DNA of 64,000 bases from Ministeria vibrans ATCC 50519 (taxonomy: Eukaryota > Protista > Filasterea): positions 62,674 to 126,673 of the forward strand of contig CALSCP010002175.1 in assembly GCA_943704425.1 (NCBI GenBank), given 5' to 3'. Under the pieces are notes generated by a model. It was not told the origin of the DNA and did no database searches. It was given only the letters and a program-made list of their open reading frames with translations. A program made the translations under genes and the position numbers. Below are positions 1-50,337 of the stretch, piece after piece; the stretch's first letter is position 1; every line of letters begins with the position of its first letter.

Positions 1-674
1 AGCAGACACTCAGTGGGCTTTGCGTCGCCGCCTGTCGTCTTTCGTTGTCCCTTTCCACCACCACCACCACCACCACCACCACCAGGTGTCGACTTGAAGC
101 ACTCCTGGCACCAACCTTTTCCATTGGAAGTCGGGTTTTTGAGACACTACACGTGTAGAAGTAACGGGTGAGAGGGCGGTTGAGAGAAACCCCAAGAACG
201 AACCTTGGTGCAAACTCCTTTCTTTTTAGTCATTGCATGACACGCTGTACACATGTTGGCGTTTGCTTCCATACCGCACTTCTGGTGGCACTGTCGGCAG
301 CTCCAGCCGGCGGGGTCGTCCTTGATCTTTTCCTTTGGCACATTCGATAGTGGGAAGTACAGCGGCAATAGCTTTTTGTAAGCATCTGATGAGATATCGT
401 CAAACGTGACAAACACAACCCGCTGTAAAGAGAGAATAAATGAAAGAAAGAACACGTAAGACGGAGAAACAATGCGAGAAAAAATCATTTCTGACAAGTT
501 GAGATCGCTGCAAGAAGAGACGCACAACAGACATAGCAATGCGCGCGGCCTTGTCGGTGGGGAAGCCATACACTCCAGTTGAGATGCAGGGGAACGCCTA
601 AGAAACAAACACGCAAGAGATTGAGGATCTTCTTTCGTCCATGTACCACAAACACACACACACACACACACACA

Positions 675-756
<82 letters not shown>

Positions 757-24141: not shown

Positions 24142-24337
24142 ACGGATATATTAATAAGTTTTACGGTTATATAAAGACAAAATGAAGTGAATTAGTTCTC
24201 AGATAATCACAATTGTTTTTGTTTGTTTTGATTTTTGCATTTTCATCAACTCCACTAAAAAATTTAAAAATAGTTTCAGTTTCTATTTGACTATTCGGCG
24301 CCTCAATCTTTATTGAGACACTTGTATCCAACGGAGC

Positions 24338-24605
24338 ATGTCCAGCGCATTGGACGAGCAGCTGGCGACAGGCATCCGCGATGCGCTGAGCCGCTTAGGG
24401 TTGAAATTGATCATCGTGGCGCGCATCAAAAAGTCCGTCCTCGAACTGCTCACTGCCCTCAGCGAGCCTGCCTGCCACGCCGCCGTGGCGACAGCCTTTG
24501 TTGCCGAATGCAAGATGCTCACAGCGGGCACTCAGGACGCGTTTTTGAGCCTGATGCGCCGAGTCATTGACAACACCAAAGGCACCTCCTCAACAACAAC
24601 AACAT

Positions 24606-24647
<42 letters not shown>

Positions 24648-27600
24648 CTTCAGCCGCCTGCGCATCCTCTTCCCCTACTGTGCCGCCGCCCCCCATTTTG
24701 CCACGCCACCTCGACGGAACTGTCTTCAGAGTGACGCGCGACACGATTCAGTGCCGTGTCGACTACTCCTCGACGGAACAACGCAAGCATTTCCCTTCGG
24801 AGCTCTCTGCTCGCCTCAATCAAGCCGCCCAGCCATGGGGGTATGCCCTTCGCTCTGATGACAAGGTCCGCCTTGCAGTGGGACCAGCCAGAGGGCAGAC
24901 AAAGAAAATTTACGTCCATTCTGTCACTGTCACAAAGATCTCATCGCCCGTGCCTCGTCCGAGGGACATTTTGGTCGCCTTCGAGAACGACAATCCGACT
25001 CGCATTATTGAGATTCTTGCTGACGGCGGCGAAGCGGTTCTTGAGGCTCTGCTCACGCATGACTCGAGAGAGTGGATCAACACAACGCACCTTGCCCAAT
25101 TCATCCGTGCGTGTGAGGCCGCACTCTCGTGTCCCACTGCAAACTTGCAGATGACGCGTCGGCAAACGCTTGCCGCACTCATTGGCGACAGTGAATTTTT
25201 CACCGTTGCTCTCGTTCGTCTGGCACCCAAGCTCAGTTGCGCTCGCCTCCCGGTTCTCGAGCTTATGAAGCTTATGCGTCTCATTGTGCTCAGTGCGCCA
25301 CACCTCTCGCCCCACATTGTGTCTATGTGTCGCGCACTCAGCGTCAACCCCTTGGTGCGCCTTGATCCCAGTGCCATTCTCGACATCTTTGATCCGCTTG
25401 CCGACGAGTATGCGCGCAAGGACACGCGCGCACGCACACCGGCCTCCATTCACCGCCAACTCCAACAACAAGACTACACCAAACTCTCTCTGATCCCACA
25501 CGTTTCCGAACTACGCTGGCCCCTACCCCTTAACATGCTTCCCGACGCTCAAATTCACTATGAAAGCGCTCACACCATGCTCGACACACTCTTCAAGCTC
25601 TACCGTGCCGATGCCTTCCTCCAACTCCAAGCTCTCGTCGTGGAGCACATCAACAGCAAAAAAAGCACGCCTGCTTCGCCATCCAAGCGCGTAGGTACGG
25701 CTAGCACAAGTCGCAACTATGTGCACACGAACGTGCAGTTTGTCGGCTTTCATCAGACAGAGCGAGTCTACATGCACGCTCAACGCAACTGGAGTGTGCT
25801 ACTGCGTCTCGACCGCAAGCCGAGCTCCTCCTCCCTTATGTACGGCAACCTTCTTGCTGTGTCGCCCAACGGCTCTTTTGCGCAACACAACACTCTCTTT
25901 GTCGCCATTGAGCGTGATGACGACAAAGGCTCTTCCAAGAAGCTCCTCATTCGAGTGCGACTGCTGCAGACTCCCACCTCACCCGATGCGACCACTGCAT
26001 TGCTAATGCTAGCCCACAGTCCGTCGCTAACCTGCATTGAGAGCCCCGTCTTTTTCGTTGCCTTTGCCTCAGTCATGACTGCTCTTCAGCGTCTCTCCGA
26101 CACCTCGCTGCCGTTCCCCGACGATCTCGCTGCTCCAGCCAACCTACCCTCTACCGCATCTGCTCCTCCTGCATACGTCACTGAGCAAACAAACAACACC
26201 TGTGATTGGAGCATCATCTTTCCAGGTGCTTCCAAGGGTCCGTGCACGCCCAAGCACCTTGCCTTGTTGCGCACCTCCATGACCGCTTCCCACCTGGACG
26301 TGAGTCAACTTGAAGCTCTTGAACACATCCTCTCGCATCGCCTCGCGCTTGTTCAGGGGCCCCCTGGCACCGGCAAGAGCCGCCTTGCTTCTCACCTTGT
26401 TGCGTTGCTCCTTTCCAACCCTACGCAAGACCGTCCCATTGTGGTCATCACATACAAGAACAAGGCTCTCGATGACTTTTGTCTCTCCTGTATGGAACTT
26501 GCGGGTCTTTCTCCAGGCGAGCTTGTTCGTCTCGGTAGTCGCTCTCAAGACCCAAAGGTGAGGGATGGGGGATGATTGTTTTCGGCTCTTTCAGCTTACA
26601 TCACCACTTTGTACGACTTCAATAGATTGCCGAATGCAGTGCGTCGAAACTGTTGTGGAAAACGCTCACCCACGAGCAACGGAGCTCAGTGAAGCGACTT
26701 GAGGAACAACTGTCGCCGGACAATCTACCGCTTGAGGAGGAAGTAGAGAGGTCCATTGCGAAACTTGAAGACGCTCTGTCACTGGAGTGTGCGGTTGAGG
26801 CGTTGCTTGAGGTGTGGACGGACCGTGCGGAGCTAGTCAGCGAATTGATGGCGCTGGTGGAGCCGCCGTCGTCGTTGAGTGCATCAAAGAAGAGTAATAG
26901 AGGAGCGGTCGACTTGGACAAGAAGGAGACGTTGGAGATGCTCATTGCCGAGTTTCAGTCAATGGAGCCCGGGCAAATGCTCGATGTGGTGCGCGGGGAT
27001 GAACAGTCTCAAGTGAGAGGAAGTCTGAAAGAGCGTCGTTTTCTGATGCTCAACTGGCTCACCAAAGCAGTCGCTACGTGGCTCGATGTTGCACACTGCT
27101 CTGACGCTGCCACTGGCTTCCTCGATGACCAGACCGACGACACCGTTGCCAGTGCGCCTGACAGTGACATTTTGCACGATATCAATGACCTCGAGATGTC
27201 GCAGAACGAAGAGCGCTCGTCGACTGTGCACGAGCGTGTGGCGGCCACGAGCGAGTCGCTGGGCAACGACTTGACGAAGGAAAAGGGAAAGCGCGCAAAA
27301 GAGATGGACATAGGCGATGGTGTCGCGAAGGGACAGCCAGATGACTATCGACGTCCAGTGAGCGAGTCGGTCGAGTTGCTTACGCACGCCGTCCTGAGCG
27401 CCCTTCGTCTTGACGCTCAGCCGAACACCACAAGCACGGCCGACGGCGACGATGCCACTTTGTTGGCCTCCATGTCACCGTTAACGTCACTGTCACACCC
27501 ACGGAGCCTTGCGTCAAGCGCACCGGCCGAACGTCGCCTCTACCTCGGAGGTGTGCTTCTTGCCACAGGCCGAGTATCGCAGCTTTGCTCCCACATTAAG

Positions 27601-30208
27601 CGACAGCTTGCCACTGCTGACTCGCTGCACGCTCAGCTCATTGAGCAATATCAAGAGGCGCTCAAGTCGCTCTTGAGCCGTGCTCGCATTGTGGCCATGA
27701 CGACCACAGGTATGACAAGAGACTAATCCCAGCGCATCATTATATTATTTTTACTATTAGTATTAGTATTAGTATTATTATTACTTATTCTTATTATTCT
27801 TATTCTTATTCTTATTCTTGTCCTTATTCTTATTCTTATTATTATTATTATTATTATATTATTATATTATTTATGTTTTTCATGCTCCAACTTTTTTTTT
27901 TCTCTTTCTGCAGGCGCTGCCATTCACGATCGCCTTGTGCGGTCCATTGAAGGCCGTGTGCTTGTTGTGGAGGAGGCGGCGGAAATTTTGGAACCACAGT
28001 TGTTGGCGTGCCTTCACGAGCGGATTGAACACGTCATTCAGATTGGCGATCACTTGCAGTTGCAGCCAACGGTGAACACGCACCGTCTCAAGGTCGACAA
28101 GAAGTTTCGCTGGTCTCTCTTTGAGCGTCTCGTCAAGGCGAAGCGTCCCTTTGCCACCCTGCGCTTCCAAGGACGCCAGCTGCCCACTCTTGTGCCGCTG
28201 CTCCAGCAGGTGCACACTGGCTACAAAGGTCTCGAGTCCAACATGAACTCGGTCGCACACCTCAAGGCCATCAATTGTCTCTACCCTCAAGAGGCTCCTT
28301 TTACCTTTCTCGCTCATTCCAATCGATCACAGGCCATGTACAATGAGCACGAAGCATTCCTTGTCCTGCAGCTGCTCCACCTCCTTACGACTGGCTCGAA
28401 TCCCCCTGTCATCCTTAACAAAGTGACCGTTCTCGCTGGCTACGCTCGTCAGGTCTGTCGAGAAAGAGAAATAATCCGTGATGTTTTATAATAATTTATT
28501 ATTATTATTATTATTTTATCAAATTGATGTGACTTTGACCATTCTGTTATTATTAGTGTTATTGATGTGATTTTGGCCTTTATTATTATAATTTTTTATT
28601 ATTTATTATTATTATTATAATTATTATTATTATTATTGTAGACATTGATTGATGTGACTTTGATCATTCTGTAGGTTGAATTGTTGAAGAAGTTGTTGTC
28701 GAACCACGACATGTCGGAAGCGACAGTGATGACAGTCGACGCAGCCCAGGGTGCCGAGAACGACGTAGTGATTGTGTCGCTGGTGCGAAGCGCTGGTGCA
28801 GGGACGCCCATTGGGTTCATGAGCACAAACAATCGCATTGTGGTGCTGGCTTCGCGTGCGCGACGTGCTCTCTACCTGGTCGGCCACGGCGAAACATTTA
28901 AGTCTGCTCGCAAGTCTGTTTGGCCCAATCTCATCAAGTTTATGAGCACCAAATCAGCCGTGGTCTCCCAGCTTGACTACGTCTGTCCTGTACATGGGCG
29001 CACCAAGAACACCTTTTCACTCAAAGCAAACGGTATGATAATATAATAATTATTAGAATAATTAGAATTATATAATAATTATTAATGATATTTAAACAAC
29101 AATAAACAACCAAAGGTGCGTCTACCGGTCTTGACACTCTCTTTGTAGTGCCTCAACAGCAGCAGTGGAAACCACCTCTATTGTGCTGCGAACAAGTGAA
29201 GCTGAATTGCAAGCACACAGCTCTGTGTAGTGAAGCCACAGCCTCCTTGTTTGTCTGTCGCGACTGTATCAAACCCGTTATGACCGTACGAAAAGTGACA
29301 AAACCAAAATATTATTATGTTATTAATTATTTATTTATTTATTTTGGGGGGGACCTTGTTCTTTGTGATCTTTTCAGGGCAACAGAGTGCCGCCCTCTTA
29401 CTGGACAAGCATCAAGGCGAACAAGCGTCCCGATCATGGCAAAGAGTTTTTTGATGTAACAGACTCTATGCGACATTGCGTGGAGGACCTGATGAATGCG
29501 ACCGCCGAGCCCGCAACGCACGGCACCGGTGCCGACTCGCACAAGGAAATATTTATCAAGTTTAAGGTGCTCAAAGTGGAGCGGTGTGAAAACTGGCCGC
29601 TGTGGGAACGCTATGCACAGTATCGTCGACAGCGCCTGGAGGAGTTGGTTGGAGAGAGAGCTGTGCTGCGCGACGAATACGAAACGCAGCTGCAAAAGGG
29701 CATTTTGAAGACGCACGAAGTATTGACGGACGCCTGGCGCAGGGGAGATGATAAGATGCACAGCTTTTGCGAGTCTCGTGCGAACGAACATTTTTTGTTT
29801 CACGGGACGGATGCTGCCGCGAGCAACAACATTGGCAGTGGGGGTTTTATCGACAAGATTGGCAAAGGCATGTTCGGCGAAGGCTGTTACTTTGCCGAGC
29901 GATCGTCCAAGTCAGACCATTACACGGGGACTTCACCTCCTTACACTATGTTTGTCGCTCGCGTCACTCTGGGTCTCTACCACGAGCAGCTACATTCAGA
30001 CAACACTTTGAAAATGCCGCCTTGCTCTCGCCCGTACTGCCACGACTTCAAGTTGTGTGCGTCACAGCGTCACGTACGCCCTCACAGTGTCGTCTTTGTG
30101 GCTGGCCAGCGACCCCAATCCCATCCTGCTCGCTTCCGTGAGTTTATTGTGTACGACAAGGCGGCCGCCTACCCCGAGTATCGCGTGACCTACAAGAGGG
30201 TGACATGA
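24338..30208 (+). CDS. ZNFX1-like (Upf1-type SF1) helicase fused to a C-terminal PARP catalytic domain (H-Y-E)
   Basis: ZNFX1-like motifs LDTLFKLYRADAF, LMYGNLL, IESPVFF...ALQ...LPF, QGPPGTGKS, RLGSRS, MTTTG|AA, VVEEAAEILE, IGDHLQLQP, SLFERL, TVDAAQGAENDVVIVSLVRS and SRAR. In-frame GT-AG splicing through a small Cys exon (about 29116/29148-29285) reaches exon 29378-30208 with FLFHGT, GMFGEGCYFAERSSKSDHY, MFVARVTLG and FREFIVYD...YPEY. Confidence 0.88.
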
Positions 30209-30599
30209 AAGTGACATATTGAATGAAACCCAATGCAAACCCAAGCAAGGGTGAAATACTTTCAAAAAGCTTAACCGTATTTAGTGACTAGCTATGGCTA
30301 GCTAGGGGTAAGATGATAAAACAGTGACAGGAATCCCATTATATTAATGGAGTCACAGAAGGAAAAGTAAAATATAAATAATTTTATTGATCTTTTCGAA
30401 TTTCGCCGCAACAGAGGTAAGCCCGCCTCAGACGAACCCCAAATCTCCAAAGAATGAAGCGCCCATATAGATCCACAAAAAATAAATCAAAATAATTAAT
30501 TAAAATAATTATTTAGATTTTAGAATAAGTCAAATTATTTCGTCCTCTTCCTTTTTTGTCGCCCCCCCTTAGTGTACCTCCCCGCTCGAAGAGGAGAGC

Positions 30600-39073: not shown

Positions 39074-43286
<4,213 letters not shown>

Positions 43287-49264: not shown

Positions 49265-50337
49265 TCAATCGCTTGCAGACGCGCACGAAAGACGGCCCGC
49301 GCGGACGACTCAGAGTCTGGCTGCTCACCAAACACAGCGAGTTCCTTTTCGAGGTCGGTGATACGCTGTTTGATCTTGGGACGTGTGTTGAACAGTGTCT
49401 CACGGATACGCTCCGACTGCAGCGCCACGAGCTTGCGTGAGAGTGCTGCGACACCCACTTCGTCTTCGGGGAGCTCGCCAAGCTCGTCGTGGCCTGCGAA
49501 GAAGGCACGCTCACGCTCACGTGCCTCATCGAGACTCAGCTCCTCGTCGTTCTACGCCTGACTGCGGTTGCGCACGCAGAAGACGGAGCATTTGAAGTTG
49601 GTGGACGCGTTGCGGATCTTGGTGTGCAGGCCGGGCTCGGCGTGCTGGTCGACCTTGGTGAAGCAGAGTAGCGTGCGCGTGCCGTCGGTATCGAGTTCGC
49701 GAGACATTTGCAGCGTCTTGCTGGTGGACACGTCGACCATGGCCGAGACGACGTTGAGCAACACCGCCTCGGGTGGTGTCATGTAGCGGCGGTACATCTT
49801 TGTGATGGTCTCCTCTATGTCCTCGCTCTGTCCGCCGACCGCAACGCGTGTCATACCGGGCAGATCAATCAGTGTGAGGTCGTCTTGCTCATGGCGGAAC
49901 ACGGTGAGCTCGAGCGGCTTGTCCACCACGTCTTTGCGGTCGCCCGCGAGTTGCTCGGTGCTCGCCTCAACCTCGCGCGCAATGTCACTCAGCTCGATGC
50001 GCTTTTCCAGTCCATCGCCCTTAATGAGGGCATGCTCCCGTTCGCTCGTGGGGCAGGTGCGAAGCATAAGCACGAGCGGGACTCGCGTCTTGATGCCCTC
50101 ACCGCGCGGCAAATCGACTCCACTTAGCGCCTCTAGCGCCGAAGTTTTGCCGTGGCTCTGATCACCAACAGCGACGATCGACGTCACGTTGATGTCCTTT
50201 TCGTCGCTGGACAGCTTGCGCAGCTGGTCATTGAGCTGCAGCACCGGCCGGATGTGTTTTTCAGAGAAGGTCGCAAGAGGTTTTATGGAGCAGCCGCTTC
50301 GGAGGGCTAGATTGTCTTGAACAATGAAGCTTTCATC
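49265..50337 (-). pseudogene. Mx/dynamin-like GTPase pseudogene (nonsense codon plus C-terminal truncation)
   Basis: IRPVLQLND.LR, IVAVGDQSHGKTSALEALSGVDLPRGEGIKTRVPL, LTLIDLPG and TKVD. In-frame TAG at 49552-49554, after which the same frame continues (EARERERAFF...VGVAALSRKLVALQ...I) until about 49265. Stalk and GED are missing. Confidence 0.85.

Follow-up and report, generated by a model that had tools for sequence, protein, structure and literature searches.

A cluster of PARP, NADAR and macrodomain genes in Ministeria vibrans, built around a PARP-NADAR core that recurs in other eukaryotes

The DNA considered here is a stretch of 64,000 nt from the filasterean Ministeria vibrans ATCC 50519 (GenBank assembly GCA_943704425.1, contig CALSCP010002175.1, positions 62,674 to 126,673 of the forward strand), hereafter the window, which extends to the end of its contig. 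Its left-hand part is occupied by a cluster of some ten genes for proteins that add or remove ADP-ribose, spread over approximately 34 kb (58.9-92.9 kb of the contig) and reaching about 4 kb beyond the left edge of the window, into the upstream contig sequence that contains the left end of the cluster (L003). Exons are long in these genes, and the introns are short and of the GT..AG type. They encode PARP-type ADP-ribosyltransferases (ART) with zinc fingers, NADAR hydrolases and a macrodomain, and at the right-hand end there are two further PARP domains, one joined with a receptor-like ectodomain and the other with a helicase (Table 1).

The abundance of these families elsewhere was assessed through six-frame searches of the whole genome (29.7 Mb in 2860 contigs) with Pfam profiles, applying the curated cut-offs of 26.7 bits for PARP (PF00644) and 35.1 bits for NADAR (PF08719). 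There are only about 13 PARP, five NADAR and three Macro (PF01661) loci in total. Of these, the window contains three NADAR loci (7995-8252 (+), 11581-11802 (+) and 12475-12845 (-)), each of which exceeds the curated cut-off, together with one Macro locus at 535-1006 (-) and two PARP loci detected by profile at 29732-30196 (+) and 39693-40109 (-). If the 21 Pfam-detected loci are placed at random, at least five of them fall within a single 34-kb span with p ~5e-6; if tandem copies are first collapsed, all three families coincide in one such span with p ~4e-4. The dense clustering proposed in a reading of the sequence alone (henceforth the sequence-only reading) is hence confirmed, and the caveat attached to it, that these families might be so numerous as to be found together by chance, does not apply. 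The divergent PARPs and two degenerate genes, ps2 and ps8, have paralogues within the genome only in the cluster. Two loci for PARG and one for ARH were found by the same profile search, on other contigs.

Searches and structure predictions were run on single exons or on intron-free genes from other organisms, and spliced models served as frame checks. The zinc-finger PARPs g3 and g5 are paralogues (E 3.5e-12), and alignment to an intron-free relative identifies the motifs FHGT, G-x-YFS/T (YFS-YFT) and DEVVVY or DEYVVY, which correspond to the His-Tyr-Glu (H-Y-E) triad. Single exons of the two genes score 15.3 bits (g3) and 22.9 bits (g5) against PF00644, beneath the cut-off owing to the introns that interrupt the domain; likewise g0 scores 20.9 bits, below the cut-off, and its intron-free relative on the protist contig L006 scores 32.6 bits. 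The complete triad can be read in g1, g3 and g5 and in the PARP domains of the helicase gene and of the predicted receptor model; it is incomplete in g0, in which the Glu is replaced, and in ps2 and ps8, which have lost the His and have no Glu strand. Four PARP-fold genes with an intact triad had been predicted, and all four were supported: g3 and g5 by alignment, the receptor gene by a predicted splice model and the helicase gene by RNA contigs. Most copies in the cluster retain both long open frames and the triad.

Pfam scans of the open reading frames (ORFs) containing the ART domains returned PARP only and no DarT. A genome-wide search with the DarT profile PF14487 gave no match, although the control was likewise without a match, and phmmer found no match among PDB sequences for the g5 exon or for the ART exon of g1. 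A word-indexed homology search with the g3 ORF also returned nothing, the query having probably been swamped by an acidic low-complexity region.

The gene g1 had been taken for a simple macrodomain gene. A macrodomain is indeed encoded (PF01661, 62.4-62.9 bits), with the motifs NAAN, GGGGVDGA and ISTGVYGFP read in translation, but the gene is in fact a fusion of Macro, zinc finger and ART that runs off the left edge of the window. The ORF at 1064-2401 terminates in the start motif of the macrodomain, and the ART exons lie at L003 8873-9549 and carry the motifs FHGT, YFSED and PEYAIYD; the neighbours of the ART exon in a protein language model are clusters of PARPs (score 0.93). Two W-x-C-x2-C...C-x2-C stretches resembling RanBP2-type zinc fingers were noted by eye downstream of the macrodomain (window 146 to L003 9841, minus strand).

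The genes in the left-hand part of the cluster are linked by a Cys/His (CH) motif, C-x(1,2)-[FYWI]-x(3,16)-C-x-C-x-[HC]-x(3,5)-H, which probably binds zinc. It occurs eight times in the 74 kb scanned, on each occasion at the coding-strand 5' end of one gene of this group (g0, g1, ps2, g3, g4, g6, g7 and ps8), and once in 76.6 kb of other loci from the same genome. At the other end, these genes variously encode a zinc-finger PARP, a NADAR, a Macro-ART fusion or a decayed ART. The presence of a common CH module in putative writers and erasers of ADP-ribose, as well as in the degenerate genes, points to local duplication in which the C-terminal enzyme domain was exchanged, and the eight genes look like a single, locally duplicated family that has undergone such domain swapping; it also argues for action on one common partner. 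The earlier argument that the mixture of unrelated folds could not be the product of tandem duplication alone was therefore half right, as duplication appears to have been accompanied by domain swapping. The combination of CH module, zinc fingers and PARP is also found in amoebozoans and in the MMETSP transcript P0002, which aligns to the full length of g3 (as does the sequence P0006) and has a CH part matching those of g0 (E 1.7e-5) and g1 (E 1.2e-4).

All three NADAR genes expected from the sequence (g4, g6 and g7) reach the PF08719 cut-off, and all three encode a C-terminal G-x-N-x-(L/M)-G motif, that of g4 being GENQMGKMLMEVR in the ORF at 8336-8623. Two of them are arranged head-to-head with PARP genes, the starts being about 270 bp apart in the g3/g4 pair and 288 bp apart in the g5/g6 pair, so that putative writers and erasers are paired. 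The linker of g6 contains six tandem units of 72 nt (repeat family D5) at 10589-11164, encoding the 24-aa Ser/Pro-rich repeats; the middle copies are 97-100% identical, which suggests that the repeat expanded in frame very recently.

The degenerate genes ps2 and ps8 form an inverted pair bracketing the g3-g7 block. They are 43% identical (tblastn E 5e-25), and ps2 is the sole relative of ps8 in the genome. Their zinc finger matches that of the cluster PARPs (hhalign, 94%), whilst the C-terminal part matches the PARP family weakly, at the expected place (hhalign E 5e-4, probability 31%). The region following the finger keeps the C...C..C-x-(I/V)-(I/V)-R-x-G signature of the family at the expected position, and the neighbours of these proteins in the protein language model are again PARP clusters. 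An AlphaFold2 model of ps8 from a two-sequence alignment had a mean confidence (pLDDT) of 44.7. With moderate confidence, the two genes are probable ART remnants; their previous description as PARP-like stands as regards the zinc finger, and less firmly as regards the ART-like part.

The receptor-like gene on the right-hand side begins with a 1052-aa ORF at 18621, in which EGF and Kelch domains are detected by Pfam. Removal of two predicted introns (21693-21741 and 21837-22024) would give an open frame of 1148 aa that includes FHGT, GCYFAE and REFIVF, equivalent to H-Y-E. Its PARP domain is paralogous to that of the helicase gene (30-48% identical, E 1.7e-17). For the latter gene there is direct evidence from RNA: two runs each yielded one contig of about 4.9 kb, covering 24659-30250 with five GT..AG introns removed, and the joined exons form a single open frame throughout. 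The catalytic exon scores 64.1 bits against PF00644, and its alignment to tankyrase-2 covers the H, Y and E positions; there is also a Cys-rich exon at 29149-29285. The helicase exons contain AAA_11 and AAA_12, the core of superfamily 1 (SF1) helicases, and two of them have ZNFX1 (9q9z) as their best match in the PDB, with E values of 5e-12 and 6e-19 that are 7-14 orders of magnitude ahead of Upf1 and Aquarius. The match to the ZNFX1 domain PF25396, at 19.7 bits, falls short of the 27-bit cut-off, and no NFX1-type zinc fingers were reported by the Pfam scan of this gene. Both of the sensor-fused PARPs inferred in the sequence-only reading thus have support, in the form of a predicted model for the receptor-like ectodomain and spliced RNA contigs for the ZNFX1-like helicase. 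The orphan protein encoded head-to-head with the helicase gene has no Pfam match, and no homologues were found for it in the word-indexed search.

Table 1. Features of the M. vibrans cluster. Positions refer to the window unless given for L003, the upstream contig sequence.
Feature	Position	Strand	Content
g0	L003 6224-8620	+	Zinc-finger PARP: CH module, five C-x3-C...C-x3-H zinc fingers, ART with His and Tyr, without Glu
g1	1 to 2401, on to L003 8873	-	Three CH modules, coiled coil, MacroD-type macrodomain, zinc finger, ART (H-Y-E)
ps2	2947-4463	+	CH modules, zinc finger, degenerate truncated ART-like region without the His and the Glu strand
(CT)n microsatellite	4490-5030		540-bp intergenic run between convergent ps2 and g3; repeat families D1, D2 and D6; holds 10-N gap 4765-4774
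g3	5237-6966	-	CH module, acidic linker, two zinc fingers, PARP-type ART (H-Y-E, 4-Cys insert); three exons
g4	7232-8623	+	CH motif (7334-7399) and NADAR, PF08719 42.7 bits
g5	8790-9974	-	Zinc finger and PARP-type ART, H-Y-E, 4-Cys insert; last exon LNYDEYVVY
g6	10263-11970	+	CH motif (10284-10349), six 24-aa Ser/Pro repeats, NADAR, PF08719 64.2 bits
g7	12153-13159	-	CH motif (13055-13120) and NADAR, PF08719 52.1 bits on one exon and 35.1 on another; alignable to the L006 NADAR
ps8	13504-15136	-	Inverted paralogue of ps2: CH modules, zinc finger, degenerate ART-like region
152-N gap	15510-15661		Intergenic, upstream of ps8
Receptor-like PARP	18621-22304	+	Signal peptide, Kelch propeller, about 10 EGF, transmembrane helix, cytoplasmic tankyrase-like PARP; predicted splice model
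Decayed copy of the last PARP exon of the receptor gene	22465-22647	+	tblastn E 3.5e-4, 32% identity
Orphan 469-aa protein	22732-24141	-	RGG/GGR-rich N-terminus; head-to-head with helicase-PARP, 196 bp apart
Helicase-PARP	24338-30208	+	ZNFX1-like SF1 helicase and tankyrase-like PARP (H-Y-E); six exons, 1722 aa

Two runs of N interrupt the assembled cluster, neither of them within a reading frame. The left half contains just the 10-N gap, within a microsatellite, and by itself carries the Macro-ART fusion, the three NADARs, the zinc-finger PARPs and both remnants; hence the core content of the cluster does not depend on the join across the 152-N gap. The flanks of that larger gap are unique in the assembly, and their pattern was absent from metagenome contigs. 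The right half is matched at over 99% identity by contigs of up to 151 kb from independent DNA and RNA runs of several studies, and spliceosomal introns and composition agree with the rest of the window.

Relatives of the zinc-finger PARPs are widely distributed. The g5 exon retrieved 338 at E <= 1e-3 from among 1.8 billion representative sequences, originating from basidiomycetes, amoebozoans, a malawimonad, Anaeramoeba, Marchantia and marine transcriptomes. All ten of the top-ranked relatives that were scanned pass PF00644 (29-59 bits), and amongst the best 150 of the 338 the signature HG[TS]...C...C...C..C is present in 138 and the upstream finger in 40. The evidence as to fold comes from the g3-like relative on L006, which stands in for the intron-split domains of the window: the AlphaFold2 model of this protein, from a 50-sequence alignment, has a pLDDT of 94.9 and finds the catalytic domain of tankyrase 1 as its best structural match (E 7.7e-17, template modelling score 0.75-0.79). 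Given this tankyrase-like fold and the PF00644 matches of the relatives, the zinc-finger PARPs are PARPs, and not DarT-like enzymes. Tankyrases 1 and 2 are the closest match in both fold and sequence for both PARP subtypes of the cluster, with H, Y and E aligned; however, the cluster PARPs have neither ankyrin repeats nor a SAM domain, and the zinc site predicted from the sequence of the zinc-finger PARPs would lie between the His motif and the next helix, unlike that of tankyrase.

The genomic surroundings of this PARP clade were compared in nine foreign loci carrying its members, each being scored for a NADAR within 10 kb. This was found in four: the protist contig L006, Tulasnella, Fomitopsis and Serendipita. 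On L006 (9.4 kb, GC 66%), a g0-like PARP and a g3-like PARP are followed by a NADAR. Tulasnella has a NADAR, a PARP, a NADAR+PARP protein (933-938 aa, annotated in two assemblies) and another, weak NADAR. A 23-kb stretch of Fomitopsis contains three pairs of PARP and NADAR genes, of which two are divergent, and in Serendipita four PARPs and one NADAR are found in 8 kb. The three basidiomycete clusters resemble the M. vibrans locus in having PARPs of the same clade (30-41% identical to g5) beside at least one NADAR, in some cases divergently, and differ from it in that no Macro, receptor or helicase fusions were seen in their flanks. By an informal estimate, linkage in four of nine loci is very unlikely to be due to chance, as NADAR is a low-copy family. 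In Artomyces, a PARP of this clade is convergent with a metacaspase (Peptidase_C14; 10001-13640 of the locus) in place of a NADAR. Relatives of cluster genes also occur in metagenome contigs, which at 1-2.6 kb are too short for an analysis of synteny.

The sequence-only reading knew of no eukaryotic cluster of this composition. Among genomes the cluster is not unique, these four loci having the same PARP clade beside a NADAR; no description of PARP-NADAR pairing in eukaryotes was found in the literature searched, though there may be a prior mention by de Souza and Aravind (2012), who defined NADAR. A review of fungi states that no NADAR has been identified in them (PMC13720257).

The surroundings of the cluster are of a different character. 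From 31 kb onwards the window encodes housekeeping proteins, including a galactosyltransferase, the E2 component of a 2-oxoacid dehydrogenase and an OHCU decarboxylase. A canonical WGR-PARP of the PARP1/2/3 type is situated at 39174-42111 (-), 9 kb to the right of the cluster; its numerous introns are AT-rich and packed with (TAA/ATT)n, and it appears to be a housekeeping gene standing outside the cluster. Further along is an exon of a dynamin-family GTPase at 49552-50244 (-) (Dynamin_N, E 1.4e-36). The window also encodes a COG2 protein whose closest matches are from animals (39% identity), followed by those from fungi. Immediately to the left of the cluster, SelO-like exons, assigned by eye, lie at L003 4080-4773 (-) and an 851-aa repeat-rich ORF at L003 865-3420 (+); these probably mark its left boundary. 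Within the span is a small ORF at 16259-16941 (+), one of two genes there unrelated to ADP-ribose, which has a signal-peptide-like start and is broken by a (ATT)n/(ATGAGT)n microsatellite. Elsewhere in the genome there is a vault-type, PARP4-like gene with BRCT, PARP_reg, PARP, VIT and VWA domains and a ubiquitin-like domain near the C-terminus (contig C986, 2-4861 (-) of the segment 41000-50900). A search for repeats in the window found simple-sequence repeats only, with no terminal repeats and no hallmark of a mobile element or virus. An exact-protein look-up of one window ORF returned no record, and DNA of the window is also present in metagenomes from seawater and associated with algae.

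What recurs among eukaryotes is the PARP-NADAR module at the core of the cluster, a variant of the bacterial pairing of an ART with a hydrolase, which supplies a candidate partner for eukaryotic NADARs. The reading that we favour, and to which we assign a probability of about 0.6, is that the locus is a real, lineage-specific ADP-ribosylation cluster, in which this writer-eraser core has been amplified by local duplication and domain swapping, and that it would be used in sensing conflict or stress. The NADARs that have been characterised hydrolyse ADP-ribose linked to guanine-N2 or to cytidine, in DNA as well as in RNA, and act as antitoxins to DarT1 (PMC11543638, PMC12945103). On the side of the writers, human PARP10 and PARP15 can modify RNA bases (bioRxiv 10.64898/2026.03.31.715305). 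As regards the substrate, the antagonism of writer and eraser and the role in defence, we infer that the zinc-finger PARPs with H-Y-E would write ADP-ribose on a shared target, reached via their CH and zinc-finger modules; as the known NADARs act on base-linked ADP-ribose, this target could plausibly be a nucleic-acid base. The mark would then be erased by the divergently transcribed NADARs and the macrodomain of g1, whilst the helicase-PARP and receptor-PARP would couple sensing to the same chemistry, and ps2 and ps8 might serve as decoys or regulators. The appearance of one chemistry on two sensor architectures, a Kelch-EGF receptor and a ZNFX1-like helicase, makes a role in sensing conflict or stress the most likely, and the combination of local amplification, pseudo-enzymes and sensor fusions is suggestive of defence. 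The sequence-only reading, which proposed a co-inherited system for defence or non-self signalling, is therefore supported in part, by the composition, the clustering and the sensor fusions.

Several observations weigh against this reading. NADAR was absent within 10 kb in five of the nine foreign loci (Balamuthia, Pelomyxa, Anaeramoeba, Artomyces and Marchantia), and the NADAR+PARP fusion of Tulasnella corresponds to two proteins in a third assembly, so could be an artefact of gene modelling. Comparison of the NADAR paralogues gave no sign of a distinct, PARP-linked subfamily, the window NADARs being not clearly closer to that of L006 than is another NADAR of the same genome. The PARP fold is of the tankyrase-like, protein-modifying type, and not DarT-like. 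In the preprint on human PARPs, the marks written on RNA bases were removed by the macrodomain protein TARG1 and not by NADAR; specifically, NADAR left the guanine-N1 mark written by PARP15 in place (bioRxiv 10.64898/2026.03.31.715305). Furthermore, the two halves of the cluster are joined only through the 152-N scaffold gap, and housekeeping genes and an ordinary, repair-type PARP are found nearby.

As a first alternative, the cluster may be an endogenous regulatory or repair system, placing a reversible mark on the chromatin, RNA or proteins of the cell itself, for instance in signalling of stress or DNA damage. The tankyrase-like catalytic domain, the neighbouring WGR-PARP, the housekeeping flanks, the lack of mobile-element or viral hallmarks and the ancient, widespread nature of the PARP clade among eukaryotes are all in keeping with such a system. 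However, amplification, pseudo-enzymes and fusions to a ZNFX1-like helicase and a Kelch-EGF receptor would be more usual in conflict genes that evolve rapidly, and the housekeeping erasers PARG and ARH are located elsewhere; we consider an endogenous role less likely than the favoured reading, though of appreciable probability.

A second alternative would dispense with functional coupling. The motif shared by the N-termini of eight genes, the two degenerate ART copies and decayed exon copy, the restriction of paralogues to this locus and the near-perfect 72-nt coding repeat, a sign of ongoing local instability, could all reflect birth and death in a family descended from one CH-module ancestor, which duplicated locally and acquired varied C-terminal domains; neighbouring genes would then be merely recent copies, several of them decaying. 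Local duplication nevertheless leaves unexplained why PARPs of the same clade have NADAR neighbours in another protist and in three basidiomycetes, why two pairs have short divergent promoter regions and why most copies keep long frames and the H-Y-E triad, making this account unlikely.

The adjacency of writer and eraser in several lineages, with the erasers belonging to the family of DarT1 antitoxins (PMC11543638), could also be interpreted in terms of selfish, toxin-antitoxin-like pairs, in which a PARP toxin modifying DNA or RNA is held in check by a NADAR antidote and the pair is kept by addiction or abortive infection. In the bacterial DarT1-NADAR system (DarTG1), as here, an ART of the ARTD clade is encoded beside a NADAR hydrolase as a genetic unit, the removal of a mark by the cluster NADARs being putative. 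The cluster writer is however a eukaryotic PARP domain (tankyrase-like fold, H-Y-E and 4-Cys insert) accompanied by zinc fingers, no DarT was matched in the scans of the ART ORFs, and the genes are spliced, divergent, nuclear genes that do not form an operon. Selfish pairs hence seem more improbable still. That the cluster is an artefact of assembly, with unrelated or contaminant DNA joined in a scaffold, would be in line with the two N gaps in the span, the larger of them unbridged, and with the fragmentation of the assembly, but is highly improbable given that the left half suffices without the large gap, that the 10-N gap is inside a microsatellite and that the right half is backed by independent DNA and RNA runs, with introns and composition in agreement with the rest of the window.

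Animals provide two further points of comparison for the favoured reading of a lineage-specific ADP-ribosylation cluster. The vertebrate macro-PARP cluster, PARP9-DTX3L-PARP14-PARP15, which has a link to antiviral immunity, comprises tandem PARP genes with macrodomains, and g1 is comparable in being a fusion of Macro and ART. To our knowledge, the vertebrate cluster has no NADAR, no common CH module and no fusions to receptors or helicases. ZNFX1 (PDB 9q9z) shares the SF1 core of AAA_11 and AAA_12 with the helicase-PARP, which differs in ending with a PARP catalytic domain and in the absence of detected NFX1-type fingers.

According to recent papers, the physiological role of NADARs in eukaryotes is unknown (PMC11543638, PMC11125620, PMC12945103), and endogenous ADP-ribosylation of guanine or cytidine in eukaryotes "has not yet been discovered" (PMC11125620, PMC12945103). 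A PARP clade that is recurrently found beside NADAR in distant eukaryotes, or annotated as fused to it, is a concrete candidate for the writer that partners these NADARs, such that the question of what writes their substrate can now be tested with a few recombinant proteins. More tentatively, the PARP-NADAR pair may be the eukaryotic counterpart of DarT1-NADAR, carrying out reversible base ADP-ribosylation from basidiomycetes to protists, which in M. vibrans would have been amplified and wired to a shared zinc module, a macrodomain and two sensors, one extracellular and one an RNA helicase, as a locus of innate immunity. A PARP that serves as the output domain of a ZNFX1-like helicase, as seen in the transcript, and of a Kelch-EGF receptor, as predicted, bears on how innate immunity evolved in the vicinity of the animal lineage.

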